Shown one piece after another: positions 1 to 19,879 of a stretch of DNA of 64,000 bases (positions are counted from its first letter, which is position 1; each line of letters starts with the position of its first letter). The stretch is from the sequence record ON568341.1; one strand, 5' to 3'. The notes under the pieces were generated by a model. That model saw nothing but the letters and a program-made list of their open reading frames with translations. It searched no databases and was not told the DNA's origin. The translations under genes and the position numbers were made by a program.

Positions 1-138
1 AGTACTGTAGTACTGTTGGACACTGGAAAGGTCGCCAATGATAAAGCGATTGCAGGTATATTAACGGATCTTGAGCCTGGTAGCAGTGCACCAATAACGT
101 TAAATGGTAAAGTGTTTAATATTTTACTCACTGATTAA
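1..138 (+). CDS. 3' end of a hypothetical protein, truncated by the window
   Basis: Frame 1 is open (STVVLLDTGK...LLTD*) to TAA at 136-138 and is followed by a terminator. Confidence 0.6.
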   Translation, partial: STVVLLDTGKVANDKAIAGILTDLEPGSSAPITLNGKVFNILLTD

Positions 139-144
139 GTACAT

Positions 145-166
145 AGCCCACCTGGTGGGCTTTTTT
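145..166 (+). terminator. Rho-independent terminator
   Basis: AGCCCAC-ctg-GTGGGCT stem followed by a T-run. Confidence 0.85.
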
Positions 167-371
167 GTTTTTGTAGTATCGTAGTACTGAGATACTTTGA
201 AAATAGTTTTAAGAAAGTAGTTGACATTACCGCAGAAAAGCGTAGAATGTATTACATCAAGACGGGGAGCACTAAGTAGACCGCCAGTAAGTCGAACGAA
301 AAACTGGACACGTCGAGAAAACTTTGATACACTAATAAACGTAAACTAAACTTTAATTGAGGATTTATAAA

Positions 372-854
372 ATGGCTAATGTAAAATCATTTCTGAAAGC
401 ACTGATTTCTAACGACACTGCTATTGCGGCTGAATTGCTGGCGGATCTGGATAGCGATACCATGAAAGCAGTACGCAACAATTTTAACATTGCGTACAGT
501 GAAGCTAAAGAACTGCAAGCCAAAAAGATAGCAGAACTGGAAGAACAGAAAAAAGCCCGTGAAGAAGAACTACAAGCAACGATTGAAAGTATTCAGGCGG
601 CGGTTGCAGGGTTGGATCTGGAAGTAGTTATTGAAATGGCACATAAAGCACTGGCAGTTAAGTACGGGGAAGATAAGCCAGTAACTAAACCTAAAAAATG
701 GATTCAGGAACGCGTAACGGTTGTTCTTGATAATGGCGAGGAACATTTAATTCCCGTGCGTGGTAACTGCATTGCGGTAGTTCTGGATGCTATCAAAGAA
801 AGCGGATTGACTCGCGAGGAATGGATCGAAGCTCACCGCAAAATTGAAGCATAA
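372..854 (+). CDS. H-NS/StpA-like protein with a divergent DNA-binding motif
   Basis: N-terminal coiled coil. The C-terminal VLDNGEEHLIPVRGNCIAVVLDAIKESGLTREEWI aligns without gaps to the E. coli H-NS segment [35 protein letters not shown] (recalled from memory). SD GAGG precedes ATG 372. Confidence 0.6.
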   Translation: MANVKSFLKALISNDTAIAAELLADLDSDTMKAVRNNFNIAYSEAKELQAKKIAELEEQKKAREEELQATIESIQAAVAGLDLEVVIEMAHKALAVKYGEDKPVTKPKKWIQERVTVVLDNGEEHLIPVRGNCIAVVLDAIKESGLTREEWIEAHRKIEA

Positions 855-875
855 CAATTAAAGTACTGAATCACT

Positions 876-902
876 AGCCCACTTCTTATAGTGGGCTTTT
901 TT
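876..902 (+). terminator. Rho-independent terminator
   Basis: AGCCCACT...AGTGGGCT followed by a T-run. Confidence 0.85.
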
Positions 903-1129
903 GTGTTTATCGTTTACCAGTCCACTAGCACCGCCTAGAATCGATTCTAACGCATTAAACTGATTATCTGATGAATAGCCCTAGCTGGTGGCGTTAATGC
1001 CGTTAGAAAGCGATTGAGGACGTTTAAAGTATTTTGCAAAAAGTAATAAAAAGTACTTGCACGATTAAGAGATTAGAGTATAATTAATTACATCAAGACA
1101 AGACACCTTAACTAACTGAGGATATAAAG

Positions 1130-1282
1130 ATGAATACTTATGAACTGGATTGTTTCACTTTACAAGTAATGTCAGTATGCAGTAAAAAAGATTGGTCATC
1201 AAAGGAATTTAAAGCAGTTATTGCGTGTGCAAAACACGGCAAGACTATCAATGAAACGGCATCAATCATTGATAAACTTTAA
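1130..1282 (+). CDS. Hypothetical protein (50 aa, not in the ORF track)
   Basis: Promoter at 1057, SD GAGGA, MNTYELDCF...IDKL*. Confidence 0.7.
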   Translation: MNTYELDCFTLQVMSVCSKKDWSSKEFKAVIACAKHGKTINETASIIDKL

Positions 1283-1354
1283 AAAATAGTTTGACAATAG
1301 TTTTAAGTACTGCGATAATACATACATCAACTACTGAATAGGAATAAAAAAACA

Positions 1355-1582
1355 ATGGCTATCATCATTACTTACGTATCTGGTACTACTGGCACTGCTT
1401 CAACTGTTGCTGTAATTACTAATAAGAAAGGAGCGGAATTACATTTTGCAATGGATAATTGGGCCGTGAAGGAGTTCGGACCGTGGGCAAGTGTAGCATA
1501 CATTGAAACCTATCAAGTGCCATCGATTAGCTTAACTGATTTAGGTGTAGATCGAATCTTATGCCTGGATGAATTAATTTAA
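1355..1582 (+). CDS. Hypothetical protein
   Basis: Own promoter and SD. Confidence 0.75.
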   Translation: MAIIITYVSGTTGTASTVAVITNKKGAELHFAMDNWAVKEFGPWASVAYIETYQVPSISLTDLGVDRILCLDELI

Positions 1583-1668
1583 AAAAGTACTTGCAAAGTA
1601 AATCGAATAAAGTATAATACATTACATCAAGGGGAGAAAATGGTTCTCCCCACTAAGAGGAAACTAAT

Positions 1669-1812
1669 ATGAAAACTTGTCAATGTGGTAAAAAATCTAT
1701 TACTGGTTTGAAACGGGGCGTTGCACTTTGCCAGTACCATTATAATTTACAAGTATGGGGTAAAGAATGGGCCGATCAAGTGGAAGCAATTAAGAAAGCA
1801 AAAAGTAAGTAA
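1669..1812 (+). CDS. Small Cys/His-rich protein, possible Zn ribbon (47 aa)
   Basis: Promoter, hairpin leader and SD GAGG; CQC...CQYH. Confidence 0.7.
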   Translation: MKTCQCGKKSITGLKRGVALCQYHYNLQVWGKEWADQVEAIKKAKSK

Positions 1813-1893
1813 AAATATTATCACAGTACTATTGACATAGATTGATAGTACTGGCATAATAGATTTTATCAAGACAACTAAGAGGAAATTAAA

Positions 1894-2238
1894 ATGGCTA
1901 ACATCAATACTATAGCAGCACAAAATATTAACCTGTCTTCTGTTGAAGTTGTACACATTGCCGCCCGGCGTTGGTTCCAGGCGTCTTATGGTAATACTTA
2001 TTTCTCTTTAACGGTAGATGTTGAAATCAATGGCGAATTTATTGAAGTAGTAAACGTGCCGTTCCAATATGGCTACGGGGATCATTTTGACACTGTAGCA
2101 ATGGAAGAATTTAGCAAGGTTATTAATATGGAAGGTAAAGAGTTTTTACGCGGTTCTTATCTTTCCCGTTTTTGCCGTGATAATAATATTACTGTTTATA
2201 GTTCTGTTAGTGATGTTAAACGCAAAAAAGATCTTTAA
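1894..2238 (+). CDS. Hypothetical protein, paralogue of 7732-8055
   Basis: Shared GNTY.S, YGYG and DVKRKKD motifs. Confidence 0.8.
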   Translation: MANINTIAAQNINLSSVEVVHIAARRWFQASYGNTYFSLTVDVEINGEFIEVVNVPFQYGYGDHFDTVAMEEFSKVINMEGKEFLRGSYLSRFCRDNNITVYSSVSDVKRKKDL

Positions 2239-2318
2239 TTAGCTTTACTTTATGCAGATACTTTGATATAGTGTCTGCATAGGGGAAAGAAATTAAATCA
2301 ACTTAAGAGGATAGTAAA

Positions 2319-2588
2319 ATGAAAAATATCAGTACTTTAATCGATGCAGGCACACATGTTCGTCGGTCTATGGTTGCAACCAGTTCTACAAAACAAGTAG
2401 CGAGCGGTTATCTTGTATTTGTGCACGATGGAAAACTCCTGGAACGTTCAATCAATTTTGATGTTAAAAACAATTGCCGTTTTATTATCTTTAAGCGTGA
2501 GCAATATAAAATTGATTTACCAGCAAAGCCCATTAGTGGGGCGTACAACGTGCAATCATTGTTTGAGCGTCAACCATACACCTATTAA
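2319..2588 (+). CDS. Hypothetical protein
   Basis: Promoter at 2244, SD GAGGA. Confidence 0.75.
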   Translation: MKNISTLIDAGTHVRRSMVATSSTKQVASGYLVFVHDGKLLERSINFDVKNNCRFIIFKREQYKIDLPAKPISGAYNVQSLFERQPYTY

Positions 2589-2639
2589 TCAAAACAACGT
2601 TAGCGGTCGATTTAGGCCGCTTATACTGGGGATTATATA

Positions 2640-2810
2640 ATGAATACTAATCAAGTACTGAACGAGATTGAAAGCATCATTAAACCGATGAAGCGTACTG
2701 ATGCAATGTTAACACCGGAAGAATGCCGCTTATATGAGCGTTACAGCGTCGAACAAGTCCAGGCAATGGCCCGTATCCGTCCGGTTGCCAGTACTGATAA
2801 GGCGGCGTAA
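2640..2810 (+). CDS. Hypothetical protein (56 aa, not in the track)
   Basis: SD GGGGA, MNTNQVLNE...DKAA*. Confidence 0.6.
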   Translation: MNTNQVLNEIESIIKPMKRTDAMLTPEECRLYERYSVEQVQAMARIRPVASTDKAA

Positions 2811-2811
2811 T

Positions 2812-3021
2812 ATGCTTACTGTACAGGATAAGATCGACATCTTAAAGGTTAATATGTATGTGATTGATGCCGTACCTGGTAAAGTATTTGCATACGATGA
2901 CACCACTGTAAGCAATTTCTACTATAGCCAGGACGTGGGGGATCTTTCTGTACAGTCGGTTATTGAAAATGTAGTTAATGCAGCGTATGAGCATTTACTT
3001 TCAAATAGTACTTGCAATTAG
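2812..3021 (+). CDS. Hypothetical protein
   Basis: ATG immediately follows the upstream stop; start corrected from 2734. Confidence 0.65.
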   Translation: MLTVQDKIDILKVNMYVIDAVPGKVFAYDDTTVSNFYYSQDVGDLSVQSVIENVVNAAYEHLLSNSTCN

Positions 3022-3090
3022 TTTTCAGTACTGTATAATGTTTTACATGAAGGGGAGAAATAGTACTCCCCACTAATTAAGGAATATGAA

Positions 3091-3237
3091 ATGAAAGCAT
3101 CAAAAAAGAGTAATACTAAGAAAGCATGTTCACCTTTCGCTGGGGTATTCCCTTTACGTTTCGTTGATGAAGTGGTTTCCTACCCGCCGGGCCTTACTCC
3201 TGAGATGGTAGAAAGTTTGCGTAAATCTAAAAAATAA
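3091..3237 (+). CDS. Hypothetical basic protein (48 aa)
   Basis: Promoter at 3012, hairpin leader, SD AAGGA. Confidence 0.65.
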   Translation: MKASKKSNTKKACSPFAGVFPLRFVDEVVSYPPGLTPEMVESLRKSKK

Positions 3238-3318
3238 TACTTGCAATTAGTTTTTAGTACTGTATAATGTTTTACATGAAGGGGAGAAATGATTCTCCCC
3301 AAGAACAGGAGAAACAAA

Positions 3319-3471
3319 ATGAAACAATACAACGCTCGGTTTGATGTTACTATCGGCAACGGCAAAGGTCAATTCTCTTTCAGTACTCGTAAGAGTTATA
3401 CAGAAAACTTCTTGCGTAATTGTGCACTGACCGCCGCACAAATTAAACATTATTTTCAGGCTAAAAAATGA
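3319..3471 (+). CDS. Hypothetical protein
   Basis: Promoter at 3241, SD AGGAG; start corrected. Confidence 0.7.
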   Translation: MKQYNARFDVTIGNGKGQFSFSTRKSYTENFLRNCALTAAQIKHYFQAKK

Positions 3472-3557
3472 AATCATTAGCTTATTATAGTTCGGCCCTG
3501 GTCGGTGCATTGATCGCGGCATTGTTAGTAGCTTATCTATTCTTTATGGTGATTTAA

Positions 3558-3695
3558 ATGAATCCTAACGGTATAATTTACAGTACTCCTAAAACGAAAG
3601 CAGATAAAGCTAAAGCACGTAAAGCGAAAGTAAAGGAATACATCAAGCAAGGCATGACACGAAAGGCGGCGATTCTAAAAGCTAAAAATAAATGA
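3558..3695 (+). CDS. Very basic small protein (45 aa)
   Basis: MNPNGIIYSTPKTKADKAKARKAK...; SD GGTGA. Confidence 0.55.
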   Translation: MNPNGIIYSTPKTKADKAKARKAKVKEYIKQGMTRKAAILKAKNK

Positions 3696-3800
3696 AAAAA
3701 GTGGTTGACTTCGGTCAGCCATTTTGCTATTATATAATCATTGAGAGATAGCTCACTAGCCCACGGGGTGCGGGAGTGTATCTATTATATAAGCATTGAG
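3695..3800 (+). ncRNA. Terminator/promoter/small-RNA cassette, copy 1
   Basis: Hairpin containing TTGACT-17-TATTAT, then an ORF-less stem-loop with a TAGCCCACGGGGTGC core. Confidence 0.5.
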
Positions 3801-3916
3801 TACTGAAAACTATTTTAAAAGTATTTGCAGAAAGTACTTGCAAACTATCTCAATTGGCGTATAATGTTTTACATCGCAAGGGGAAACGGTTTCCCCTAGT
3901 AATAAGGAATAAAATC

Positions 3917-4258
3917 ATGACTATTGCAATTGTACAATCTAACTTTGAAAATGAAATCATCGCCCAAGCACTGCGTTTAAATGATGGTCGGGCCGAAATT
4001 AATTACGGTTTCAATTCAGGCGGTTGTGAAAAATATCAGTACTTTATAACTGCTGATGGCGGTGTCCTGGGTATTAATACAGTTATTGTAAACATTCAGA
4101 AAATTAATTTCAATGATCCAGACGATAGCCAGTTTTACATTATAGGCGTAGACGTGAACTATGAGGATGACTCACTAACTGATGATTACACTGGCGAGAA
4201 GTTAGAAAGTGCATACGGTGAAGATGATTATCAGTCAGTACCAGAAGATTTCGAATAA
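3917..4258 (+). CDS. Acidic hypothetical protein
   Basis: Promoter at 3838, SD AAGGA; start corrected. Confidence 0.75.
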   Translation: MTIAIVQSNFENEIIAQALRLNDGRAEINYGFNSGGCEKYQYFITADGGVLGINTVIVNIQKINFNDPDDSQFYIIGVDVNYEDDSLTDDYTGEKLESAYGEDDYQSVPEDFE

Positions 4259-4358
4259 TATTAAAAAATAGTTTGACAATAGATTATAGTACTGTATAAT
4301 AGTTTACATCAAGAAACGGGAAGTAACAGTACTTCCCTACTAACAGAGAGAAAACAAA

Positions 4359-4571
4359 ATGGCTGATATCCGCACTTTACTGAAAAATGCAAAACGAGTT
4401 TTATTTTCTGATCACGAACATTTAAACAAGGATATTACTGGCGTTCGGAATATCAAAGATGTAAAACGTGTTATGGGTATCTATTGCAATATGAAACGTG
4501 TTGGCACGTTCGGTAATAAATTTCTATACCAGGCGGGGGATTACAATTTTACACTGACTATCATTAACTAA
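4359..4571 (+). CDS. Hypothetical protein
   Basis: Own promoter, leader hairpin and SD. Confidence 0.75.
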   Translation: MADIRTLLKNAKRVLFSDHEHLNKDITGVRNIKDVKRVMGIYCNMKRVGTFGNKFLYQAGDYNFTLTIIN

Positions 4572-4653
4572 AAATATTATCACAGTACTATTGACATAGT
4601 TTGATAGTACTGGCATAATAGATTTTATCAACTACACTACTAAGGAATTAAAA

Positions 4654-4833
4654 ATGGCTATCATCGCAAAAACTGAAATCATCGGCCTGGATTCTATCAT
4701 CATGACGTTTGAAGATCAAAAAGGTATGTATGTAGTTTCCTATGGTGATTATGTTCGGGAGTATGAAACAGTAGACGAAGCCTTTGAAAGTTACATTCGC
4801 CAGGTGAATAAAGCATACGACGATTACCGCTAA
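4654..4833 (+). CDS. Hypothetical protein (59 aa, not in the track)
   Basis: Promoter at 4591, SD AAGGA. Confidence 0.7.
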   Translation: MAIIAKTEIIGLDSIIMTFEDQKGMYVVSYGDYVREYETVDEAFESYIRQVNKAYDDYR

Positions 4834-4946
4834 AATATATTACCAGTACTATTAAAGATATTGACAACGTTTGATAGTACTGGCATAATAAGTTTTATAA
4901 ACAGTAGTCAAATAGTAGTTAACTTAACAAAAGAGAGAGAAACAAA

Positions 4947-5090
4947 ATGATCGCACTGGATTCATTCATCGATGCAGTTCTGGCAAAAACTGGCGAGGAT
5001 CTGACCGCAGAACAATACGCAATGATCGAGCAATGCCAGCAAGACGGTAAATCGGTGAAAGATACTGTTAAGATTATCCGCAAGATGTAA
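4947..5090 (+). CDS. Hypothetical protein (47 aa, not in the track)
   Basis: Promoter at 4861, AG-rich SD, terminator downstream. Confidence 0.7.
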   Translation: MIALDSFIDAVLAKTGEDLTAEQYAMIEQCQQDGKSVKDTVKIIRKM

Positions 5091-5096
5091 GATTAT

Positions 5097-5125
5097 AAGC
5101 CCATTAGTTAACGCTGGTGGGCTTT
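5097..5125 (+). terminator. Terminator hairpin containing a Chi site
   Basis: AAGCCCA...TGGGCTT with GCTGGTGG at 5113. Confidence 0.7.
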
Positions 5126-5196
5126 AATCATTTACCCTATACAATGCCAGTACTAAACCGTTTATCTCATTAGAATGCATTACAGGACGTTTAACA

Positions 5197-5394
5197 ATGA
5201 TTAGCATGAAATCAGTACAAAAACAAATAGAAACATTATCAAAAATTAAACGTAAACAGTACTCATTAGAATATAATATCAATGGTAACTATCATCTAAT
5301 GAAAGAGAATAATTTTATCGTCATTGATGAATCATTGCAAATTATTAGTATAGTACTGAAAGCATTAATTAATGATAGAAAAAGGTTAAAATAA
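5197..5394 (+). CDS. Hypothetical protein
   Basis: SD AGGA; coupled to the next gene. Confidence 0.6.
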   Translation: MISMKSVQKQIETLSKIKRKQYSLEYNINGNYHLMKENNFIVIDESLQIISIVLKALINDRKRLK

Positions 5395-5651
5395 TGGCAG
5401 TAGGATTCGCGAAAGATGGAGCCGAGCAAGATGAGATTAACGCAGTTATTCAAGCCGCCGTTAACCACGCTAGAAAGCAAATTAACGCACAAATAGAATC
5501 ACTGATACATTGCCTCGACTGCGGCGATAAAATCCCTGAGAATCGCCGACAGGCTGTTAAGGGATGTAAGTACTGCATTAATTGCCAAGTGGATCATGAT
5601 AGTACTTTTAAAAGAGATCCGCGTAATTGTTGGCATAGATCTATGAGATAA
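5394..5651 (+). CDS. TraR/DksA-family C4 zinc-finger protein (YbiI-like)
   Basis: MAVGFAKDGAEQDEI N-terminus and CLDCGDKIPENRRQAVKGCKYCINCQ zinc finger. Confidence 0.9.
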   Translation: MAVGFAKDGAEQDEINAVIQAAVNHARKQINAQIESLIHCLDCGDKIPENRRQAVKGCKYCINCQVDHDSTFKRDPRNCWHRSMR

Positions 5652-5715
5652 AAAGTAATTGACAGTACTGAAAGATAGTGTATAATGTTTTATATCTTAA
5701 CTGAGGATAGAAATC

Positions 5716-6072
5716 ATGGGAATACAACATATCACGCGGACCACTGACAATGGCGAGATCACTGGTTATCAAGTACAGGGCAAAGTAGCACAATTGCAGT
5801 ACTGGTTTGTTAAACGTGGAATCATTGCACCGGATCTTGATTATGACCGTGTAGCGTTTATTGATTCTCTTTATGTTGATCCTGATAGTCGGGGCAATGG
5901 TGAAGGTAACGAATTAATGAATGCCTTTATCGATGCCGCCGATGATTCAGATTGTATCATCTTAGAATGCGATACGGGAGAAGATAACGCCTTTAATCTT
6001 AAAGAATGGTACGAAGGATTCGGATTCGAGGTACTGATCGATAGTGAATATCCTATCATGATTTTATCATAG
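5716..6072 (+). CDS. GNAT-family acetyltransferase
   Basis: IDSLYVDPDSRGNGEGNELM (motif A) and WYEGFGF (motif B). Confidence 0.85.
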   Translation: MGIQHITRTTDNGEITGYQVQGKVAQLQYWFVKRGIIAPDLDYDRVAFIDSLYVDPDSRGNGEGNELMNAFIDAADDSDCIILECDTGEDNAFNLKEWYEGFGFEVLIDSEYPIMILS

Positions 6073-6150
6073 TACTTGCATTTAGTTTTCAGTACTGTTA
6101 TAGTACTTGCATCAAGGGGAAACATCTTCCCCTACTAAGAGGAAATAAAA

Positions 6151-6339
6151 ATGGAAAACTTATCAAGTATTTTAGTACAAGATGATTTCGGTAATCCTGG
6201 AAGTGCTATCATTGTTCGGGGCAATAAAGCAACGTTTGTTATTGCTGGTGGACCCGTACAGCGTAGCATTAAAAATAATGCTGTTACCATTAATAATGTA
6301 CGCTATCGCTTAGATAAAGAATTAATTCATAAACTGTAA
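6151..6339 (+). CDS. Hypothetical protein
   Basis: Own promoter, hairpin and SD. Confidence 0.75.
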   Translation: MENLSSILVQDDFGNPGSAIIVRGNKATFVIAGGPVQRSIKNNAVTINNVRYRLDKELIHKL

Positions 6340-6424
6340 AAAAGTACTGGACAATAGATTATAGTACTGTATAATAGTTTACATGAAGGGGAGAAATGAT
6401 TCTCCCCACTAAGAGGAAAGAAAA

Positions 6425-6637
6425 ATGCAAGGTCAACTAATCGTTCGTAAATGGTCTGATACTAACGAAAAACCGTGGGATGTACAATACATCGCCCCAA
6501 ATGGTGAATCCAGATATCAACCAGGTGTAACGCATAGTACTGAGCAATTCGCCGCCGCTCATCGCGAACGTCTGTTACAATCAATGCAGCACGGTTCCGG
6601 TGAAAAATTCATTCAGGATCATTGGCTGAAAGATTAA
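6425..6637 (+). CDS. Hypothetical protein
   Basis: Own promoter, hairpin and SD. Confidence 0.75.
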   Translation: MQGQLIVRKWSDTNEKPWDVQYIAPNGESRYQPGVTHSTEQFAAAHRERLLQSMQHGSGEKFIQDHWLKD

Positions 6638-6723
6638 AAAGTACTTGCACAGTACTGAATAAAGTGTATAATGTTTTATATCGGAAGGGGAATAGTTCCC
6701 CTCCTAACAAAGAGGAAAGTATA

Positions 6724-6897
6724 ATGGTCCAGGTAGAATTAACAGTACTGAAAGATCTGTTTTATCGGATTGGTACTACTGGCGAATATCCGAAGGGTGA
6801 TAATGCAAAACTTTACGTATCACTCGACTTATGGCAACGCGAACAATTAGCAACGGCCTGGCGTAAAGGCAAAGCAGATAGCGAGGTGAAAGCATGA
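6724..6897 (+). CDS. Hypothetical protein
   Basis: Promoter at 6645, SD GAGGA; start corrected. Confidence 0.7.
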   Translation: MVQVELTVLKDLFYRIGTTGEYPKGDNAKLYVSLDLWQREQLATAWRKGKADSEVKA

Positions 6898-7043
6898 AAG
6901 AATTCTTATTTGAAGTAGTGTTTCAAGGTGTCGGTAATAACCAACTGATTCGAACAAGTGGTTATAATGTTAACCAGGCATGGAATAACATTAAACAAAT
7001 GTACCCGAACGCTATCACATATCGCAACCCGAAAGAAGTTTAA
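6894..7043 (+). CDS. Hypothetical protein (49 aa, not in the track)
   Basis: ATGA overlap, SD GAGGTG. Confidence 0.65.
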   Translation: MKEFLFEVVFQGVGNNQLIRTSGYNVNQAWNNIKQMYPNAITYRNPKEV

Positions 7044-7052
7044 AAATAATTG

Positions 7053-7155
7053 AAAAAGGGATTGACTCCGGTCAGTCCCTTTGCTATTATATACGCATAG
7101 AAACAAATTAGCCCACCGGGTGCATAAATGTATCTATTGTTTGCTGGTGGCTAGT
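7053..7155 (+). ncRNA. Terminator/promoter/small-RNA cassette, copy 2 (with Chi)
   Basis: AAAGGGATTGAC-TCCG-GTCAGTCCCTTT, TAGCCCACCGGGTGC core, Chi at 7143. Confidence 0.5.
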
Positions 7156-7368
7156 ACTATCAAGTACTGAAAACTATTTTTAAAAAAGTACTTGCAAAGT
7201 ATCACGATAAGCGTATAATGTTTTACATCAGGACGGGGAACGAAATAAGTAACCCCGTTAAGTAGTCCAGGAGTAAGACATACGAAAAACTCCCCTGATA
7301 AAATAGTTTGACAATAGAAAGTAAACGAGTATAATACTTACATCAACCACTGATAAGGAAACATTAAA

Positions 7369-7644
7369 ATGCGGACTTTACTTACAGCTAACGAAATCGA
7401 GCAAGTACTGACTACTAATCTGGAACAATGGAAACGTGAAGCAGATATCCAGGCGGTTCAATGCCTTAACGATAAGTTAACGCCAGATGACTTAAGCACG
7501 ATTGTTGATCCACAATTTTATGAAGATATTCACGACACGTCTTTAAGCGTCGAGGATGTACTTGATAAGCACTACATTGATACTGATTTACATGTTTACG
7601 GTCGTAAAAACTTTATCACTATTCACGACATTTACAATACTTAA
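7369..7644 (+). CDS. Hypothetical protein
   Basis: Promoter at 7308, SD AAGGA. Confidence 0.75.
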   Translation: MRTLLTANEIEQVLTTNLEQWKREADIQAVQCLNDKLTPDDLSTIVDPQFYEDIHDTSLSVEDVLDKHYIDTDLHVYGRKNFITIHDIYNT

Positions 7645-7731
7645 GTATTGACAAAGTATCTTAGTACTGTATAATAGTTTACATCAAGCGAGGGGAATGG
7701 TTCCCCTCCTAACAAAGAGAGAGAAATAAAA

Positions 7732-8055
7732 ATGGCTATGATCCTTACCCAGAAAGTAGAACTGAAAATTGTAACCTCCTTTGACATTAAAGTTAATCGG
7801 TGGACTGATAGCCACGGCAATACTTACCACTCCTGCTACGTGTCCGCATTGATTGGTGATCGCTGGGAAGACCTGGGACACGAAACCTTTACATACGGTT
7901 ACGGCACACAAGGCGAGTACACGGGTTTAGAAATCATTAAGGAAACTGTAATAGGTTTCAACCCGAAAGAGAAAGTACTACACAGAATTGAGAAAGAGAT
8001 CAACAAAGAAATTACAGTTCGCTACTACGATGTAAAACGTAAGAAAGACATGTAA
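7732..8055 (+). CDS. Hypothetical protein, paralogue of 1894-2238
   Basis: GNTYHS, YGYG and DVKRKKDM motifs. Confidence 0.8.
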   Translation: MAMILTQKVELKIVTSFDIKVNRWTDSHGNTYHSCYVSALIGDRWEDLGHETFTYGYGTQGEYTGLEIIKETVIGFNPKEKVLHRIEKEINKEITVRYYDVKRKKDM

Positions 8056-8150
8056 TAGAATCCATTTAAAGTACTATTTGACATTGCCCAGATAGTACTT
8101 TATAATAGACTCTAACTTGTAGTACTAACTCAACTAATAGGATGTATACC

Positions 8151-8546
8151 ATGATTACTAAATTCTACGCTACCCGTGAAGCTGCCCGTATTGTTGCACG
8201 CGAGGAAGGAGCAGCATTTAAAGACATGGGCAAAGATGCAACGAAAGGTCAACGCTGGGCCGTACAGTTCAAAGAAATCTCTGATATTGTGAATTCACCT
8301 GAGCCAGTACTGACAGCAGCAGAACTAAAACGAGCGGATATGCTGGCGGCAATACTTGACGCACAAGATGAGTTTATCGCTGACTCTGATATCAAAGTAC
8401 AGGTAAACCACACCGCATGGACTCACGCGGATCACCTGGCAAACCTTAAGCGTCCAAGTGAACTGATTCGCAACCAGAAAGAGATCCGACATGATCGTAA
8501 GGGTAATCGTGTAACAGTATACAGTAAACGCCGCCAGGTTATCTAA
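8151..8546 (+). CDS. Hypothetical protein
   Basis: Promoter at 8078, SD AGGA, terminator downstream. Confidence 0.75.
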   Translation: MITKFYATREAARIVAREEGAAFKDMGKDATKGQRWAVQFKEISDIVNSPEPVLTAAELKRADMLAAILDAQDEFIADSDIKVQVNHTAWTHADHLANLKRPSELIRNQKEIRHDRKGNRVTVYSKRRQVI

Positions 8547-8568
8547 TAACTTGCAGTACTAACAACAC

Positions 8569-8593
8569 GGCGGGATCAGTTCCCGCCTTTTTT
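8569..8593 (+). terminator. Rho-independent terminator
   Basis: GGCGGGA...TCCCGCC followed by T6. Confidence 0.85.
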
Positions 8594-8607
8594 ATAGGAC
8601 AAACAAA

Positions 8608-8862
8608 ATGATTAAGGTTCAACTATATAAAGATAACATCTTACGGGTACACTATAAAGCACCTCAGAGAATCATCACAAAGGCCGTACAGCTTGCTAAT
8701 GAGTTTATTAATGGTAACCTATTACCTAGGAAGTTAAGCAACGGAAAACTGCGTGTAATCGACGTGGACACTAACAACAGGATAGTAATCGAGAACACAG
8801 GAAAAATAAACCTATATGAACACCAACAATACAATAAGAAAATAAAACTAATATCACGTTGA
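8608..8862 (+). CDS. Hypothetical protein
   Basis: SD AGGA. Confidence 0.65.
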   Translation: MIKVQLYKDNILRVHYKAPQRIITKAVQLANEFINGNLLPRKLSNGKLRVIDVDTNNRIVIENTGKINLYEHQQYNKKIKLISR

Positions 8863-9194
8863 CAGTACTCAAATGTTTTAGTATTATGTACACATACCAA
8901 CACGGGAGAAACAAAATGAAATTATCTAAAATCGAAAAGAAAACTATTGATGAAGCAGTTAAGCACGGTTATACCTTTCGTAATGATTCACATTTTACCA
9001 ATTTTCAACAGGGGTATCGTACTATTAAAAAACTAATTGACAAAGGTTTATTAGTTGAAGTCAATAATGGGAACGGTATCGAGTATCAGCCAACCCAAGA
9101 CGCATTATCTTTAAAGAAATATAATATTATCTAATTGACAGTACTCAAATGTTTTAGTACTATATGTACATACCAACACGGGGGAAACAAAATG
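8859..9194 (+). repeat. Duplicated ~60-bp promoter/RBS cassette (8859-8918 and 9135-9194)
   Basis: TTGACAGTACTCAAATGTTTTAGTA...CATACCAACACGGG.GAAACAAAATGA in both copies. Confidence 0.9.
8916..9134 (+). CDS. Hypothetical protein
   Basis: Start corrected; the track start lies inside the promoter. Confidence 0.75.
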   Translation: MKLSKIEKKTIDEAVKHGYTFRNDSHFTNFQQGYRTIKKLIDKGLLVEVNNGNGIEYQPTQDALSLKKYNII

Positions 9195-9434
9195 ATTACT
9201 TTAGAAAAACGTATCAAAGAAACTACATCGCTGGTGGAACTGTTAACAGTACTCAAATGTAAAACAACACCATTTAGCACGCCGGACTTTATTAATATGG
9301 TTGATGTTAATGGTCGCTATCGTATCACGGTCGAACAAGGAGCGGCGAAAGTATTCAGTACTAAAAACACGAAGGAAGTGATCCACGCCGTTAATGTTAA
9401 AAAAGTAGTTGCCATTGATAGTAAAGTACTGTAA
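9192..9434 (+). CDS. Hypothetical protein
   Basis: Start corrected; the track start lies inside the promoter. Confidence 0.75.
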   Translation: MITLEKRIKETTSLVELLTVLKCKTTPFSTPDFINMVDVNGRYRITVEQGAAKVFSTKNTKEVIHAVNVKKVVAIDSKVL

Positions 9435-9465
9435 TATAGTTTCATTAACTCAAGGAGAACATGCA

Positions 9466-10050
9466 ATGCGTAATTATACTAAATTCATCCGTACACTGTC
9501 AGAAATGGAAACCAACAAAGAGATCCTTTCAGCTTGTCGGTTAGCTGGCCTGGAGATCATCGGTGCTGGTTCTTCCCGTATAGTTTTCGCTTTAAATGAT
9601 CGGTTAGTGATTAAGGTCGCGAATTGTGATGCGGGTGTAGAACAAAATGAAACTGAATGTAAGGTATGGAATTTTTTAGACTATGACCGCCCTCAGTTGA
9701 AACAGTACTTTGCAAAGGTGCATATGCATTTATGCGATCCTGATAATATGTTTATCGTTATGGATCGGTTGAGTACTGCAAGCAAAGGTAGTGTGAAGCA
9801 CGTAAACGCGTGCAATGAATTAAAGTACAATATTAAACGTAATGCAATCGAACGCCATCACCGCTTTGCTGATGCACTACAACACGTCGATGATACATTA
9901 TCAACACTAACGATAAGAGATATCAGAAAACAGAATATCGGCCAGGATCGTAATGGCCTTATTAAAGTACTTGATTACGGTTTAACCTGCAATATCTGGA
10001 ATCAGTACTATAAAAAGCGTGATGTGGCAGCAAGTAAGGTAACACGATAA
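9466..10050 (+). CDS. Protein kinase-like (Ser/Thr kinase fold)
   Basis: Gly loop GAGSSR, VIK lysine, helix-C QNETE, catalytic loop RDIRKQNIG, DYG metal-binding motif; SD AAGGAG. Confidence 0.8.
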   Translation: MRNYTKFIRTLSEMETNKEILSACRLAGLEIIGAGSSRIVFALNDRLVIKVANCDAGVEQNETECKVWNFLDYDRPQLKQYFAKVHMHLCDPDNMFIVMDRLSTASKGSVKHVNACNELKYNIKRNAIERHHRFADALQHVDDTLSTLTIRDIRKQNIGQDRNGLIKVLDYGLTCNIWNQYYKKRDVAASKVTR

Positions 10051-10060
10051 AAAAGATTAA

Positions 10061-10165
10061 AAAAGGGATTGACTCCGGTCAGTCCCTTTGCTATTATATA
10101 TCCATTGAGAGATAACTCACTGACCCATAGGGTGCGGAAGTGTATCTATTATATAAGTATTCAGT
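10061..10165 (+). ncRNA. Terminator/promoter/small-RNA cassette, copy 3
   Basis: Same hairpin as copies 2 and 4; TGACCCATAGGGTGC core; body resembles copy 1. Confidence 0.5.
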
Positions 10166-10274
10166 ACTGAAAACTATTTTTAAAAAAGTACTTGCAAACT
10201 ATCTCAATGAGCGTATAATGTTTTATATCGAGAGGGGGAAATGGTTCTCCCTAGTACTAAAAGGAATCAAGACG

Positions 10275-10496
10275 ATGACTACTATGACCTGCGTTCACGC
10301 TTCAAATCTTCTGAATGATGCAGCATTTAAAGCAGGTGAAGAATATCAATGCTATCGGGATGAAAATAAAAAAGTTTTTGTAGTTGATAATAATGGTTTC
10401 CATATTGAATTACAATCCGGCTTCACTGGTTTAAATGGTAAATCAGTATGGGGCGTACAGGATGATAAAGGTACATATCATTTTAAACGTAATTAA
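10275..10496 (+). CDS. Hypothetical protein
   Basis: Promoter at 10192, SD AAGGA; start corrected. Confidence 0.75.
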   Translation: MTTMTCVHASNLLNDAAFKAGEEYQCYRDENKKVFVVDNNGFHIELQSGFTGLNGKSVWGVQDDKGTYHFKRN

Positions 10497-10577
10497 GTAT
10501 TGACAAAGTATATCAGTACTGTATAATAGTTTACATCAAGGGGAGAATGGTTCTCCCCACTAAAAGGAAACAAAATT

Positions 10578-10850
10578 ATGTCCAGCTACTCCGCTACTAT
10601 GATCATTAAAGATATGAACGGTAATCCTACTTCTGCTGGTGGATCATTTGGAAACATTAATTTAGATGGTCGGTTATCCATGCAATCAGCCATCGATGCA
10701 GCGAAAGAAGTTTTTAAGAATGAATGTACTGTTAGTAAGCTGGATTATATGGGTTTCGCTATCGAGAAAACTACTCGTTTTGTGAACTACAAAAATCCAC
10801 TGATGATTGATACTAACCTGAAAGCTAACGAAGTGGGGTACTTATTATGA
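10578..10850 (+). CDS. Hypothetical protein
   Basis: Own promoter, hairpin and SD. Confidence 0.75.
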   Translation: MSSYSATMIIKDMNGNPTSAGGSFGNINLDGRLSMQSAIDAAKEVFKNECTVSKLDYMGFAIEKTTRFVNYKNPLMIDTNLKANEVGYLL

Positions 10851-11038
10851 CAGTAGAAGAAGTAAAAAAAGTACTGGCAGTACTACGATATCATAATCAT
10901 TGCAAGGTGAAGAATGATCCTGATTATCTTGATTCATCCCTGGAGGAAGACACCTTGAACGCTATAAGCCATATGCAGACATTAGCAAAGCGTATGACTG
11001 AAAAGAACATGCCGGACTATATCGGAAATAAAATTTAA
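10847..11038 (+). CDS. Hypothetical protein
   Basis: ATGA overlap. Confidence 0.7.
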   Translation: MTVEEVKKVLAVLRYHNHCKVKNDPDYLDSSLEEDTLNAISHMQTLAKRMTEKNMPDYIGNKI

Positions 11039-11124
11039 AAAGTACTTGCATTGTAGTTAGATTAACGTATAATGTTTTATATCGAGAGGGGAAATGGTTT
11101 CCCCTCAAGTCCAGGAGATACACC

Positions 11125-11388
11125 ATGAACACTATCGAAATCACTATCAATGCACACGTATACGACAACGTAGTACTGCAAACTACTATGACCGCCAATG
11201 ATACCAGTACTTTGCGGAATACTGTTATTAGTGCTGTATGTGCCGCTATCGGTGATGTATCCCTGGAAAATTCAGAACACATCAACAACGGTTTCACTAT
11301 GTGCAAACGTGATAACGCAAAACATATCATCGTGGAAGGTTACGGCGGTGTAGAATTTAATGTTTATATGAAAAAAGTACTTGCATAA
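11125..11388 (+). CDS. Hypothetical protein
   Basis: Own promoter, hairpin and SD AGGAG. Confidence 0.75.
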   Translation: MNTIEITINAHVYDNVVLQTTMTANDTSTLRNTVISAVCAAIGDVSLENSEHINNGFTMCKRDNAKHIIVEGYGGVEFNVYMKKVLA

Positions 11389-11455
11389 TAACTAAAACAA
11401 AGTATAATGTTTTGCATAGGGGGAGATATCCTCCCCCACTAAAAGGAGTAATAAA

Positions 11456-11680
11456 ATGGCTAACTTTGATGAACTGATGCGGGAAGTAGCTTACCTGGCA
11501 GAAGAGAAGAAATCATTCGATTCTATCTATAACACCGCTCACCGTGATTCAGTACTGGCATGTAACCAGGATCAAAAAGATGAACTAATCGCCACCTATC
11601 ATGAAGCATGGAAGTACTACCGACAATGGGAGAAAGAAGAAAGTGAGTCTACCATTGACGGCCTCAATAATCTAATCTAA
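11456..11680 (+). CDS. Hypothetical protein
   Basis: Own promoter, hairpin and SD. Confidence 0.75.
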   Translation: MANFDELMREVAYLAEEKKSFDSIYNTAHRDSVLACNQDQKDELIATYHEAWKYYRQWEKEESESTIDGLNNLI

Positions 11681-11756
11681 AAGTTTTATTTCAGTACTAT
11701 TGACATAGCTTGATAGTACTGATGTAATAACTTTACTAACTACAAGGGGAAACATA

Positions 11757-12014
11757 ATGGATCAATTCACACAATATCGGGTAAATCCTCAAGCTATGGC
11801 CTACGTAGAAGACCATAAAACGTTACCAGTACTGCAACCAGTTAAAGGCCGTATCTATCGTGGCCTTGCCTGGGATACGGCCCAGGATGGATATAAAACC
11901 GTCGCCGTGGGTATGTATTGCGGTGATGGTGAATGGTTTGATCCAAATAATCCGGTATCCATTGACAGTACTGAAAAAATGAAATGGGCCGACTACATCG
12001 AAGATATTTCATAA
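11757..12014 (+). CDS. Hypothetical protein
   Basis: Promoter-like cassette and SD. Confidence 0.75.
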   Translation: MDQFTQYRVNPQAMAYVEDHKTLPVLQPVKGRIYRGLAWDTAQDGYKTVAVGMYCGDGEWFDPNNPVSIDSTEKMKWADYIEDIS

Positions 12015-12104
12015 AAACTATTTGACAGTACTAACCAGTAATGTATAATGTTTTACATAGAGCGGGGGAATAGTTCTCCCGCCAATAGTTTGGAGTAAAA
12101 CATT

Positions 12105-12305
12105 ATGTCTATCGCTATCGCCCTGGTTGAAGTACTGAAAGAAGCTAAAGCCAACCTTATCGACGTAAAGATCCAGGAACTACAAAACGGCTTAATCGGC
12201 TGTACTTGTACCGCTGGTGGAGCGGCAGACTATCGAGAACACGAATCACTCGAATCACTGGTTCGGTATCTTACCATGATCGTTGATGATTGGAGAATCA
12301 TCTAA
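12105..12305 (+). CDS. Hypothetical protein
   Basis: Own promoter, hairpin and SD. Confidence 0.75.
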   Translation: MSIAIALVEVLKEAKANLIDVKIQELQNGLIGCTCTAGGAADYREHESLESLVRYLTMIVDDWRII

Positions 12306-12320
12306 CAAAAAAGAATAAAA

Positions 12321-12450
12321 AAAGGGATTGACTCCGGTCAGTCCCTTTGCTATTATATACGCATAGACAAAAACTAGCCCACAGGGTGCATAGGTGTATC
12401 CAAAATATATAGTTAATAACGGTGAGTAACTATCTGCTGGTGGAACTAAA
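12321..12450 (+). ncRNA. Terminator/promoter/small-RNA cassette, copy 4 (with Chi)
   Basis: Same hairpin; TAGCCCACAGGGTGC core; Chi at 12436. Confidence 0.5.
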
Positions 12451-12550
12451 ACTATTAATAAAAAAGTATTGACAAAGTATATCAGTACTGCAATAATGTA
12501 TCTCGTAGGGCGGCAATGGTGCGACGGCCCACAAAGTTAGGAGATTCACC

Positions 12551-12883
12551 ATGAGTACTTCAATCGCTATCGTTAAAGCTTTCATCCGTACTAATGTTTC
12601 CTCTGTATTCATCGACGGCCTCGACCGTAACGTAGAATACTCAATCATTATCGCACAAACGGCAAACGGTTCTCGGTACATCCTGAATGATAGTGAAGCA
12701 AATCACTACTACTTCACTAAAGCCACTGGCTTTAAACGCATCGATGCTGATGTAGTATACGCTAAGATGAATAAGCTGGTAGACAAGATTAACGCGAAAG
12801 GTACTATCGATTTACAGTACTGGACCGAAACCGATCCAGAATATGGATCTCACCGCTACCTGAATCCAGGTATCAAAATGTAA
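12551..12883 (+). CDS. Hypothetical protein
   Basis: Own promoter, hairpin and SD AGGAG. Confidence 0.75.
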   Translation: MSTSIAIVKAFIRTNVSSVFIDGLDRNVEYSIIIAQTANGSRYILNDSEANHYYFTKATGFKRIDADVVYAKMNKLVDKINAKGTIDLQYWTETDPEYGSHRYLNPGIKM

Positions 12884-12972
12884 AAAGTACTTGCATAGTA
12901 CTTAGATTCATGTATAATGTTTTACATAGAGAGGGGGAAATGGTTCTCCCTCCTAAATTAAGGAGTTTTATC

Positions 12973-13374: not shown

Positions 13375-13398
13375 GCGTTACACATCACCAAACATCAT

Positions 13399-13420
13399 AG
13401 GCCGCCTTGTAGCGGCCTTA
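13399..13420 (+). terminator. Terminator-like hairpin
   Basis: AGGCCGC-cttgta-GCGGCCT. Confidence 0.6.
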
Positions 13421-13442
13421 ACTATATCAGGAGTTCATACAC

Positions 13443-13652: not shown

Positions 13653-13676
13653 TGCGTAAAAGGATTTAGTACTGAT

Positions 13677-16577: not shown

Positions 16578-16581
16578 GCAG

Positions 16582-19867: not shown

Positions 19868-19879
19868 GAGTACTGATAT

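Follow-up and report, generated by a model that had tools for sequence, protein, structure and literature searches.

Escherichia phage UE-S1, a Rak2-like jumbo phage of E. coli (Asteriusvirus; 358 kb), encodes a protein, UES1_237, whose profile and structural similarities support its placement as a full-length, very divergent nucleoid-associated protein of the H-NS family, H-NS-like across its entire architecture. We tentatively propose that UES1_237 is a phage-owned, self-oligomerising, DNA-binding protein that is made first in infection and competes with host H-NS in the manner of Ler, a reading that we regard as plausible though not quite probable. In enterobacteria, AT-rich foreign DNA is silenced chiefly by H-NS and, to our knowledge, the known coliphage countermeasures either bind H-NS or mimic DNA. 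In this case, a virulent lineage of ~350-kb phages carries its own divergent H-NS-family gene, which would be on one of the earliest segments of DNA delivered into the cell.

The gene lies in the window analysed here, that is, the whole stretch of 64,000 nucleotides taken from sequence record ON568341.1 (Table 1). The coordinates given in the initial annotation were correct: the open reading frame starts with an ATG at 372, ends with a stop codon at 852-854, and encodes a 160-residue product identical to UES1_237, which is recorded as a “hypothetical protein”. The reading frame is a real gene, and its dN/dS range denotes strong purifying selection. CTG serves as the leucine codon in 9 of 15 cases, as against approximately 20% in the neighbouring genes.

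Table 1. Features of the UES1_237 locus, with positions numbered from the first nucleotide of the window.
Feature	Coordinates	Strand	Details or basis
Intrinsic terminator of the preceding gene, stem-loop AGCCCACCTGGTGGGCT plus T run	145..171	+	Stem-loop 145-161; annotated in the UE-S1 record; conserved in relatives
Sigma-70-type promoter: -35 TTGACA (221-226), 16-bp spacer, -10 TAGAAT (243-248)	221..248	+	11/12 consensus matches
5' leader, ~115 nt (from the inferred transcription start), with Shine-Dalgarno GAGGA at 359-363	255..371	+	
CDS of the H-NS-family protein UES1_237, including the stop codon	372..854	+	dN/dS 0.06-0.16, hhalign, Foldseek
N-terminal helical oligomerisation-type domain, residues 1-97; helices 2-12, 16-24, 28-77, 83-97	372..662	+	AF2, Foldseek, hhalign
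Flexible linker, residues 98-113 (YGEDKPVTKPKKWIQE)	663..710	+	pLDDT <50 at 102-110
C-terminal H-NS/MvaT-type domain, residues 114-160; beta-hairpin 114-118/124-128, loop, helices 135-144 and 148-155	711..851	+	AF2
Loop tripeptide R130-G131-N132, aligned with H-NS Q112-G113-R114	759..767	+	Family alignment, hhalign
Intrinsic terminator AGCCCACTTCTTATAGTGGGCT plus T run, end of the monocistronic unit	876..905	+	Stem-loop 876-897

The upstream terminator would insulate the unit from transcription entering from the preceding gene. The initial annotation described a strong early promoter, and the promoter itself is borne out by its near-consensus match and by -35 and -10 hexamers that are invariant in the six Asteriusviruses compared. 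The word “early” is a separate matter; early expression is suggested by the promoter type and by the terminal-repeat position of the gene in relatives, and the public RNA runs are metatranscriptome unitigs that show presence only, neither transcript start nor timing. The leader opens with a ACATCAAGAC motif that is common to other early promoters, and its first ~75 nt are nearly invariant among relatives; synonymous sites of the gene itself diverge, with dS values of 0.4-1.1 in pairs involving UE-S1. The stability of the leader RNA is not unusual (z +0.98), an Rfam search of the entire window, leader included, matched no family, and a guessed leader motif had no further copy elsewhere in the window.

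Carriers of the gene family are Rak2-like jumbo phages of Enterobacterales with genomes of ~350 kb, in which the gene lies inside the long direct terminal repeat (DTR) wherever that repeat has been mapped. The hosts of this lineage include Escherichia, Klebsiella, Salmonella, Yersinia, Pectobacterium, Cronobacter, Erwinia, and Serratia. In phages of Escherichia, Klebsiella, Pectobacterium, Yersinia, Cronobacter, Erwinia, and Serratia, a homologue either falls inside the DTR or sits 1.4-7 kb from the left genome end, and the near-left-end location is conserved in six Rak2-like genera (those whose records place the gene). For example, the homologue underlies g001 in phages fHe-Yen9-03 and -04. 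A link to the H-NS family has already been hinted at for one relative, gp011 of Klebsiella phage Muenster (QOE32183.1), which belongs to the same family (38.6% identical) and is likewise located in the terminal repeat. Its record carries the note “putative DNA-binding protein” with an HHpred match to NP_417155.1 [StpA] at 97.2%. Muenster gp011 differs in having a T-K-G-N loop, and the prior H-NS-family link consists of that annotation note alone. A literature search found no paper describing an H-NS homologue in Rak2-like phages, and tblastn with E. coli H-NS as the query recovered no jumbo-phage gene from 50,697 phage records.

Profile and structure comparison, which the initial annotation had named as the way to check its H-NS assignment, both returned H-NS similarity. 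Using hhalign, the phage family matched H-NS, StpA, and plasmid-borne H-NS at 94% (E 1.4e-7) over 106 columns, pairing residues 43-155 with H-NS 31-137; the C-terminal domain on its own matched at 78.6% (E 1.7e-5). In a Foldseek search of AlphaFold/Swiss-Prot, the best 18 matches were all H-NS or StpA, most with probabilities of 0.91-0.99, and spanned query residues 8-151, while one further H-NS homologue had a probability in the 0.80-0.87 range. Similarly, the C-terminal model matched an AFDB cluster named “Histone” (probability 0.98), and language-model neighbours of the protein fell mostly in Histone_HNS and MvaT_DBD clusters. One family member, P0027, matches Pfam Histone_HNS_N with an E of 2e-4, although its 21.5 bits lie below the cut-off of 24.5.

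Database searches at the sequence level were negative for H-NS. The window protein gave no H-NS-family match in Pfam or NCBIfam at gathering score, and in PHROGs it matched only phrog_27871, to which no function is assigned, with no H-NS match. Sequence searches of the PDB by phmmer and hmmsearch, using the protein plus profiles A1, A2, and A5, likewise found no H-NS match. When 21 C-terminal pieces were searched with Pfam Histone_HNS (PF00816), the sole match was to one piece at E 0.24, and MvaT_DBD (PF22055) gave none at E up to 10. Foldseek against the PDB retrieved no H-NS domain with either the full model or the C-terminal model. Several matches to other families were judged to be chance: Pfam Tox-PL-2, seen in 7 of the 21 C-terminal pieces (best E 0.0012), was below its cut-off and covered only the last 40 model positions, and Ec2ApeA (E 0.007), csx15 (E 0.5), and weak matches to coiled-coil viral fusion proteins were set aside as well.

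The initial annotation had also aligned both ends of the protein to enterobacterial H-NS without gaps, and the two alignments hold and exceed chance. At the N-terminus, phage residues 25-61 and H-NS 20-56 share seven identities with a BLOSUM62 score of 39, relative to -13 +/- 12 for shuffled sequences, and none of 20,000 shuffles reached it. At the C-terminus, phage residues 114-152 and H-NS 96-134 share ten identities with a score of 40, relative to -39 +/- 13. The offsets of the two segments differ, being +5 and +18, respectively, so the whole proteins do not align gap-free. Moreover, hhalign profile comparison found no similarity to H-NS in phage residues 1-60, and for this reason the N-terminal match may reflect coiled-coil periodicity in part.

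The predicted architecture (AF2 models of moderate confidence, pLDDT 74 and 78) can be compared with H-NS segment by segment. The H-NS site-1 invariants L8, N10, I11, R12, R15, and R19 are without counterparts in the phage protein. At site 2, the turn A79-G80-L81-D82 aligns with the H-NS turn D68-G69-I70-D71 and the helix-turn-helix reads A-G-L-D-L versus D-G-I-D-P, with G80 near-invariant in the family; the local hhalign P is only 0.003. A positively charged linker drives DNA binding in H-NS. The phage linker has a net charge of +1 versus +5 in the H-NS linker, and the linker plus C-terminal domain of the Asteriusvirus clade has a net charge of -2 and a pI of 5.6, versus +5 and 9.75 in H-NS. 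Several distant family members have a basic linker and C-terminal domain (pI 8-9.4). Comparison of the C-terminal model by VIA-align gave just three chains with Z of at least 2, including the C-terminal domains of MvaT (2mxf, Z 3.3) and Ler (2lev, Z 2.0), both from complexes with DNA. Such Z values are to be expected for a 45-residue domain but are low in absolute terms.

Within the C-terminal domain, the H-NS minor-groove motif T-W-T-G-Q/R-G-R-x-P aligns with L-I-P-V-R-G-N-C-I in the phage protein, and the equivalent of G113 alone is kept. Specifically, W109 is replaced by I, T110 by P, R114 by N, and P116 by I, and R occupies the Q112 position, as it does in the R-G-R loop of Ler and Lsr2. 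The exchange of TWTGQGR for LIPVRGN reported in the initial annotation is therefore genuine, but to call the loop “rewritten” is an overstatement, since the core is R-G-N versus Q/R-G-R, and G131-N132 are the sole invariant residues besides Met1 in 22 members of 23-94% identity. The residue preceding G-N varies across the family (R, S, T, N, K, or H). In MvaT, Asn100 takes the structural place of H-NS R114 and reads the minor groove, and its replacement by alanine (N100A) reduces DNA binding by a factor of more than 3 and eliminates silencing (PMC4466236). The equivalence of N132 to MvaT N100 is by transitivity via H-NS R114, not by direct alignment to MvaT. Together, the invariance of G-N in 22 members and the Asn100 precedent point to a loop that probably retains its function, as opposed to a dead one. 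Alternatively, G-N may be invariant because it forms a structural turn or touches a protein, and not because it contacts DNA.

These features can be combined into the mechanism that we favour. Host sigma-70 RNA polymerase would transcribe the monocistronic unit straight upon DNA entry, from the promoter to the downstream terminator. UES1_237 would then self-associate via its H-NS-like N-terminal helices, and its C-terminal beta-hairpin/helix domain would bind AT-rich duplex DNA, with the loop R130-G131-N132 entering the minor groove. The phage DNA is AT-rich, with a GC content of 0.30-0.41 in the window and 33.7% in the genome (PMC12805682), making it a natural target of H-NS. Without co-assembling with host H-NS, UES1_237 would compete with H-NS filaments or displace them on the incoming 30-41% GC phage DNA, and it may additionally organise that DNA. 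Several features run counter to this mechanism, namely a canonical motif that is largely lost, an acidic linker and C-terminal domain in the Asteriusvirus clade, the lack of recognition by Pfam, the negative Foldseek search of the PDB, the low Z values, and the moderate confidence of the AF2 models. Judging from its composition, the net charge of -2 on the linker and C-terminal domain would be in favour of weakened DNA binding.

One alternative builds on the first idea of the initial annotation, a dominant-negative decoy. In this version the protein would co-polymerise with host H-NS or StpA via its N-terminal helices, and its crippled DNA-binding end would poison the filaments and de-silence the phage genome. 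Such a protein would resemble an H-NST in which a C-terminal domain is kept but is inert. The loss of the R114, W109, T110, and P116 equivalents fits this proposal, as does the charge difference from H-NS just described; in addition, the best-matching N-terminal segment is the site-2 turn, where G80 corresponds to the invariant G69 and D82 to D71, and truncated forms of H-NS are established dominant negatives (PMC7074111). However, a decoy needs to co-assemble with host H-NS, and the lack of profile similarity to H-NS site 1 in residues 1-60, where N10, I11, R12, R15, and R19 go unmatched, argues against it; among the known partners of H-NS, StpA and the plasmid H-NS homologues share 46-68% identity with it. 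Nor would a decoy need G131-N132 to be invariant among 22 divergent members, or a folded C-terminal domain to be maintained at a dN/dS of ~0.1, and the C-terminal halves of several family members are basic. The decoy is thus not supported in the form in which it was stated, and we consider it unlikely.

A full-length H-NS-like architecture would also suit a silencer of host functions. In this scenario, an extra H-NS-like protein would repress AT-rich host defence loci (e.g., CRISPR-cas) or host transcription, as has been proposed by Skennerton and colleagues for the phage-encoded H-NS of EPV1 (PMC7074111; PMC3097231). Repression would, however, bring a virulent phage little benefit once the gene products are there, and UES1_237 has neither the canonical H-NS DNA-binding motif nor the N-terminal residues for joining host filaments, which makes this role improbable.

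The second suggestion of the initial annotation was an H-NS scaffold retargeted to a new sequence such as AGTACT. As a sequence-directed regulator of this kind, the protein would recognise a site such as (C)AGTACT(G) on early promoters through its loop and would switch early transcription off or on. AGTACT is abundant, with 213 occurrences in the window versus 16 expected and a preference for CAGTACTG, and in a repeated early promoter cassette it lies right at the -35 (AGTACTTGCAA) or just 5' of the -10 (AGTACTGTATAAT). The promoter of the UES1_237 gene itself has AGTAGT at the -35 and none at the -10, as expected if the product spares its own gene. Nevertheless, ~60% of the AGTACT sites are outside the promoter cassette and are spread across the whole 64 kb, and the ~40% that are parts of the cassette explain much of the enrichment without invoking UES1_237. 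Furthermore, what the domains of H-NS, MvaT, and Ler recognise is the shape of the minor groove rather than a hexamer containing GTAC, and the tolerance of MvaT for GC steps is only slightly greater (PMC4466236). The residue before G-N is variable, and no direct link connects the protein with the motif. We therefore regard a sequence-directed regulator as very unlikely. A related and similarly very unlikely version would make the H-NS scaffold the phage's own chromatin and regulatory protein, whose R-G-N loop would read the palindrome (C)AGTACT(G) flanking the -35 and -10 of the repeated cassette; as the first protein made, it would coat the DNA and time early shut-off, or else shield the DNA of a phage that builds no nucleus. 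Finally, an StpA-like role, in which the protein would bind phage transcripts or serve them as an RNA chaperone, is highly improbable, since, although StpA is the annotators' best HHpred match for the Muenster homologue and has RNA chaperone activity (PMC1851640), StpA and H-NS score alike against UES1_237, and the StpA activity is tied to a basic C-terminal half where that of UES1_237 is acidic.

If the R-G-N loop binds DNA, as our preferred reading of a competing, phage-owned H-NS analogue would have it, UES1_237 would link the H-NS and MvaT solutions for minor-groove reading and provide a test case for the residues that set AT-rich recognition and filament compatibility. If the protein is instead a decoy, full-length H-NS poisons of this type would constitute a new class. 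Both possibilities are relevant to the way in which jumbo phages that lack a nucleus set up infection, and to their host range in therapy.

T7 gp5.5 and T4 Arn are early phage proteins that cope with silencing by the H-NS family, as are T4 MotB (PMC7827196) and LUZ24 Mip, which acts in MvaT anti-repression (PMC8501957). None of these four proteins is known to be an H-NS homologue; their targets are H-NS or MvaT, or they act as DNA mimics. Full-length homologues of H-NS itself are carried on mobile elements, as UES1_237 is, and those encoded by phages and plasmids include the H-NS of EPV1, Sfh, Hfp, Acr2, and Sfx (PMC7074111; PMC3097231), but these are close to host H-NS, possess the Q/RGR motif, and are recognised by Pfam. 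H-NST, found on genomic islands, is also a horizontally carried relative of H-NS that is thought to counter silencing (PMC7074111). It differs in consisting of the N-terminal domain only, close to the N-terminus of H-NS, whereas the phage protein is full-length and departs furthest from H-NS at its N-terminus.

The closest architectural parallel is seen in H-NS and StpA (PF22470 + PF00816), which have the same order of elements: two short helices, a long helix, a helix-turn-helix, a flexible linker, and a beta-hairpin followed by two helices. Profile homology starts midway along the long helix and continues to the C-terminus. Conserved glycines pair up at the hairpin (G104/G122), within the loop (G113/G131), ahead of the final helix (G127/G145) and, more tentatively, at the site-2 turn, together with a terminal pair of an aromatic and an aliphatic residue (F133-L134 in H-NS, W151-I152 in the phage protein). 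In contrast, the phage protein is 23 residues longer, its site-1 residues are unrelated, its linker carries +1 and not +5, its loop reads I-P-V-R-G-N-C-I and not W-T-G-Q-G-R-T-P, it falls below every sequence HMM threshold, and its gene is borne by a virulent jumbo phage. Among solved structures, Pseudomonas MvaT (2MXF) comes closest to the C-terminal model (Z 3.3, rmsd 2.8 Å over 44 residues) and shares the G-N pair in the loop, which in MvaT (loop 2) contacts DNA as an “AT-pincer” and includes the N100 needed for silencing (PMC4466236). The MvaT loop is short (KGGNH), whereas that of the phage protein is of H-NS length, and the lysine network of MvaT is not evident in the Asteriusvirus protein, which has few lysines in the domain. 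Finally, Ler of the LEE island, the third of the three chains with Z of at least 2 (2LEV), has an H-NS-type C-terminal domain and is the functional analogue that we propose. Ler acts by displacing H-NS, not by joining it (PMC7074111), and no interaction of its N-terminus with H-NS has been reported. The two proteins differ in that Ler keeps the canonical R-G-R and resembles H-NS in its C-terminal domain only, whereas the phage protein is H-NS-like throughout.

The product of UES1_237, an H-NS-like gene of Escherichia phage UE-S1, is very probably a full-length, if very divergent, member of the H-NS family. Pfam, NCBIfam and PDB phmmer/hmmsearch searches returned no relevant match, and the protein falls in phrog_27871 (function unknown). 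BLASTP against E. coli K-12 H-NS (NC_000913.3) aligned 66 C-terminal residues at 27% identity (E 0.002 in a single comparison). The initial annotation had aligned both the coiled coil and the C-terminal domain to H-NS without gaps; each segment beats composition-preserving shuffles (37 N-terminal residues, score 39 vs -13 +/- 12; 39 C-terminal residues, 40 vs -39 +/- 13), but their offsets of +5 and +18 mean that the full-length alignment needs gaps. The H-NS likeness itself was borne out by both profile-profile comparison and structure prediction. The family is small (22 proteins by word-indexed search, 20 when an HMM was run exhaustively against 1.84 billion representatives), and hhalign of its 22-sequence alignment against 13 aligned sequences of H-NS, StpA and plasmid H-NS homologues placed phage residues 43-155 opposite H-NS 31-137 (94% probability, E 1.4e-7). 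In the AlphaFold2 model (pLDDT 74), four helices (2-12, 16-24, 28-77, 83-97) lead through a disordered linker to two strands (114-118, 124-128) and two closing helices (135-144, 148-155), a predicted order of elements that matches H-NS. In AFDB Swiss-Prot, all 18 of the 18 best Foldseek matches were H-NS or StpA (prob 0.80-0.99, query 8-151), with an abrupt fall to noise below them. A C-terminal-only model (pLDDT 78) reached a VIA-align Z>=2 with just three of 48,161 PDB chains, the first being the MvaT C-terminal domain-DNA complex 2MXF (Z 3.3, rmsd 2.8 A, 44 residues) and the third the Ler domain-DNA complex 2LEV (Z 2.0); its sole confident AFDB cluster match was a 147-aa 'Histone' protein (prob 0.98). 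Protein-language-model neighbours, a lead only, were mostly Histone_HNS, Histone_HNS_N and MvaT_DBD clusters, and one family member, P0027, matched Pfam Histone_HNS_N slightly below the gathering score (E 2e-4). Finally, the depositors of Klebsiella phage Muenster annotated its homologue as 'putative DNA-binding protein, HHpred hit to NP_417155.1 97.2%', NP_417155.1 being StpA.

UE-S1 is a 358-kb Asteriusvirus among the Rak2-like jumbo phages, and the window starts at ON568341.1 position 124001 (first 1400 bases 100% identical); these bases recur at 87-97% identity in ~35 further records of Escherichia and Salmonella phages. Judged by its divergent synonymous sites (dS 0.4-1.1 in pairs that include UE-S1) and its dN/dS of 0.06-0.16, UES1_237 is a real, functional gene under strong purifying selection. 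Six Asteriusviruses show almost no variation in the two promoter hexamers or in the leader's first ~75 nt, and the leader carries a separate constraint of its own. At 249-330 this near-invariance far exceeds that of the gene's synonymous sites; the same stretch gave no Rfam family match and no predicted stable RNA fold. CTG accounts for 9/15 leucine codons, vs ~20% in 31 neighbouring small genes, a bias that suggests high expression, or selection for translational efficiency, in E. coli. The homologous region of Escherichia phage CMSTMSU (MH494197.1 126512-127858, a record flagged UNVERIFIED_ORG) is shorter by ~47 nt, and in place of the expected 483-nt gene its annotation has only a CDS of 219 nt, reflecting either a disrupted gene or a sequencing error.

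Features of the UES1_237 locus, repeated elements of the window and homologous genes in related phages (window positions unless stated)
Feature	Position	Strand	Details
Terminator closing the upstream gene	145-161		followed by T run
Sigma-70-type promoter of UES1_237	221-248		TTGACA, 16 bp, TAGAAT; 11/12 consensus positions matched
UES1_237 leader	SD at 359-363		~115 nt before ATG; SD GAGGA
UES1_237 CDS	372-854	+	160 aa; annotated 'hypothetical protein'
Terminator 3' of UES1_237 stop codon	876-897		followed by T run
Early-gene cassette, example copies	1584-1640, 3005-3061, 6341-6397, 7158-7240, 10158-10240
~93-nt element (family D10), four copies	3685-3777, 7042-7134, 10049-10141, 12308-12400
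vB_Ec-M-J, H-NS-like gene	6853 (own record)		inside 21.5-kb terminal repeat
Muenster, H-NS-like gene			inside 20-kb terminal repeat
CBB, H-NS-like gene			inside annotated 'redundant repeat'
fHe-Yen9-03, -04 (Yersinia phages)			match under gene g001

By tblastn, the family occurs in 52-55 phage records, all from ~310-385-kb jumbo phages bar two short fragment records, with hosts in Escherichia, Salmonella, Klebsiella, Pectobacterium, Yersinia, Cronobacter, Erwinia and Serratia (for example, Klebsiella RaK2, K64-1 and Muenster, Pectobacterium CBB, Yersinia fHe-Yen9-03 and -04, and Cronobacter GAP32). Records that begin at the physical end put the gene at 1.4-7 kb from the left terminus, and those with an annotated long direct terminal repeat have it within that repeat; by synteny, the UE-S1 gene presumably lies in the repeat as well. 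The UE-S1 paper gives a terminal repeat of just 8.3 kb, a figure doubted in the fEgEco12 paper. GC drops from 0.36-0.41 (1-14 kb) to 0.30-0.34 past 14 kb of the window, and early promoter cassettes end at ~13000-15000, consistent with the ~20-kb repeat of relatives ending there on the right. The surrounding small genes all run in one direction, each with a sigma-70-like promoter; this array resembles a T5-type pre-early region, from which early expression of UES1_237 is a reasonable inference. Public RNA runs holding the sequence are metatranscriptome unitigs, carrying neither direction nor timing. Distant metagenomic homologues sit in similar arrays, adjoining a DksA/TraR-type zinc-finger gene, and contig SRR30800413_38305 has two tandem paralogues (698-1291 and 2047-2640, 197 aa each, 61% identical) that recall H-NS/StpA-type pairs.

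Similarity to H-NS is unevenly distributed. The C-terminal domain by itself scores 78.6% (E 1.7e-5) in hhalign; of the N-terminal domain just the turn at site 2, the helix-turn-helix site, aligns (phage 72-88 vs H-NS 59-77, P 0.003; A-G-L-D-L opposite D-G-I-D-P). For residues 1-60, which correspond to dimerisation site 1, hhalign gives no profile similarity, and the H-NS site-1 invariants L8, N10, I11, R12, R15 and R19 have no counterparts. In the hhalign register, phage I127-P128-V129-R130-G131-N132-C133-I134 corresponds to H-NS W109-T110-G111-Q112-G113-R114-T115-P116; the phage protein retains three glycines (H-NS G104, G113, G127) and the aromatic-aliphatic pair at the end. The initial annotation had described this minor-groove loop as rewritten, and W109, T110, R114 and P116 are indeed lost, but the rewriting was not free: G131 and N132 are the sole family-wide invariants besides Met1, with members as little as 23% identical to one another; the residue before them can be R, S, T, N, K or H. 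In MvaT, loop 2 reads KGGNH, the N100 side chain is almost superimposable on that of H-NS R114, and N100A weakens DNA binding >3-fold and abolishes cupA silencing (PMC4466236). By transitivity N132 would correspond to MvaT N100, giving a loop of H-NS length with R at the Q/R position and an MvaT-type Asn at the R114 position; judged from these alignments, it is conserved and probably functional rather than degenerate.

The reading we favour, at slightly less than an even chance, is a phage-owned DNA-binding protein of the H-NS family that would self-assemble, bind AT-rich DNA by its R-G-N loop and, as Ler does, compete with host H-NS for the AT-rich genome as it enters (window GC 0.30-0.41). 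It is favoured because the DNA-contact loop is the family's most conserved feature, because the loop Asn has functional precedent in MvaT, and because similarity is lowest in the very part that would have to resemble H-NS if the two were to co-polymerise. Against strong DNA binding counts the low charge: +1 in the linker vs +5 in H-NS, and net -2 (pI 5.6) for linker plus C-terminal domain vs +5 (pI 9.75). A basic pI (8-9.4) is seen in several distant members of the family. The loss of the loop Arg and the acidic C-terminal half would suit a decoy co-polymerising with host H-NS, as the initial annotation had suggested; this is nevertheless unlikely, leaving both the invariant G-N and the conserved folded domain unexplained. 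Silencing of host defence loci is distinctly improbable.

The initial annotation had also proposed a scaffold retargeted to AGTACT, of which the window (1-64000) holds 213 sites vs 16 expected (13-fold enriched; densest at 1-12000), with flanks favouring C 5' and G 3' (CAGTACTG). About 40% lie within a promoter cassette (AAAGTACTTGCAA at -35, CAGTACTGTATAAT at the extended -10) and ~60% outside promoter-like contexts; the UES1_237 promoter has AGTACT at neither position. Since nothing was found linking protein to motif, retargeting has only a slim chance, and an StpA-like RNA chaperone is the least probable role.

The promoter-like contexts of AGTACT comprise AGTACTTGCAA at -35 or AGTACTG-TATAAT at the extended -10. 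An early-gene cassette recurs in at least 13 copies at 187-12940 (repeat families D1, D2, D9, D15): AAAAAGTACTTGCAA, 17 nt, GTATAATGTTTTACATCAAG, a 5' hairpin GGGGAGAAATGGTTCTCCCC, SD ACTAAGAGGAAA, then a small ORF. UES1_237 has the promoter frame and ACATCAAGAC start in common with it; its leader differs, being long and hairpin-free. The ~93-nt D10 element has a GC-rich hairpin (GGGATTGACTCCGGTCAGTCCC) that shares bases with a promoter-like TTGACT, 17 nt, TATTAT, and then a second hairpin; it may serve as terminator and promoter in one. At 14000-20100, at least 11 repeats of the coding-type motif GGnACnAACTATCAGGA (families D4, D6, D11, D12, D18), spaced ~185-270 or more bases apart, suggest a tandem family of small paralogous genes directly beyond the early-promoter region.

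A literature search found no paper on an H-NS-family gene in Rak2-like jumbo phages, and the Muenster annotation is the only prior trace of the family as H-NS-like. What is new is thus a conserved, first-entering, highly divergent and readily testable H-NS subfamily. H-NS homologues on mobile elements were already known, namely Sfh, Hfp, Acr2 and Sfx (PMC7074111) and that of phage EPV1 (PMC3097231); those proteins are near host H-NS and retain the Q/RGR motif, whereas this subfamily is highly divergent and carries an x-G-N loop.
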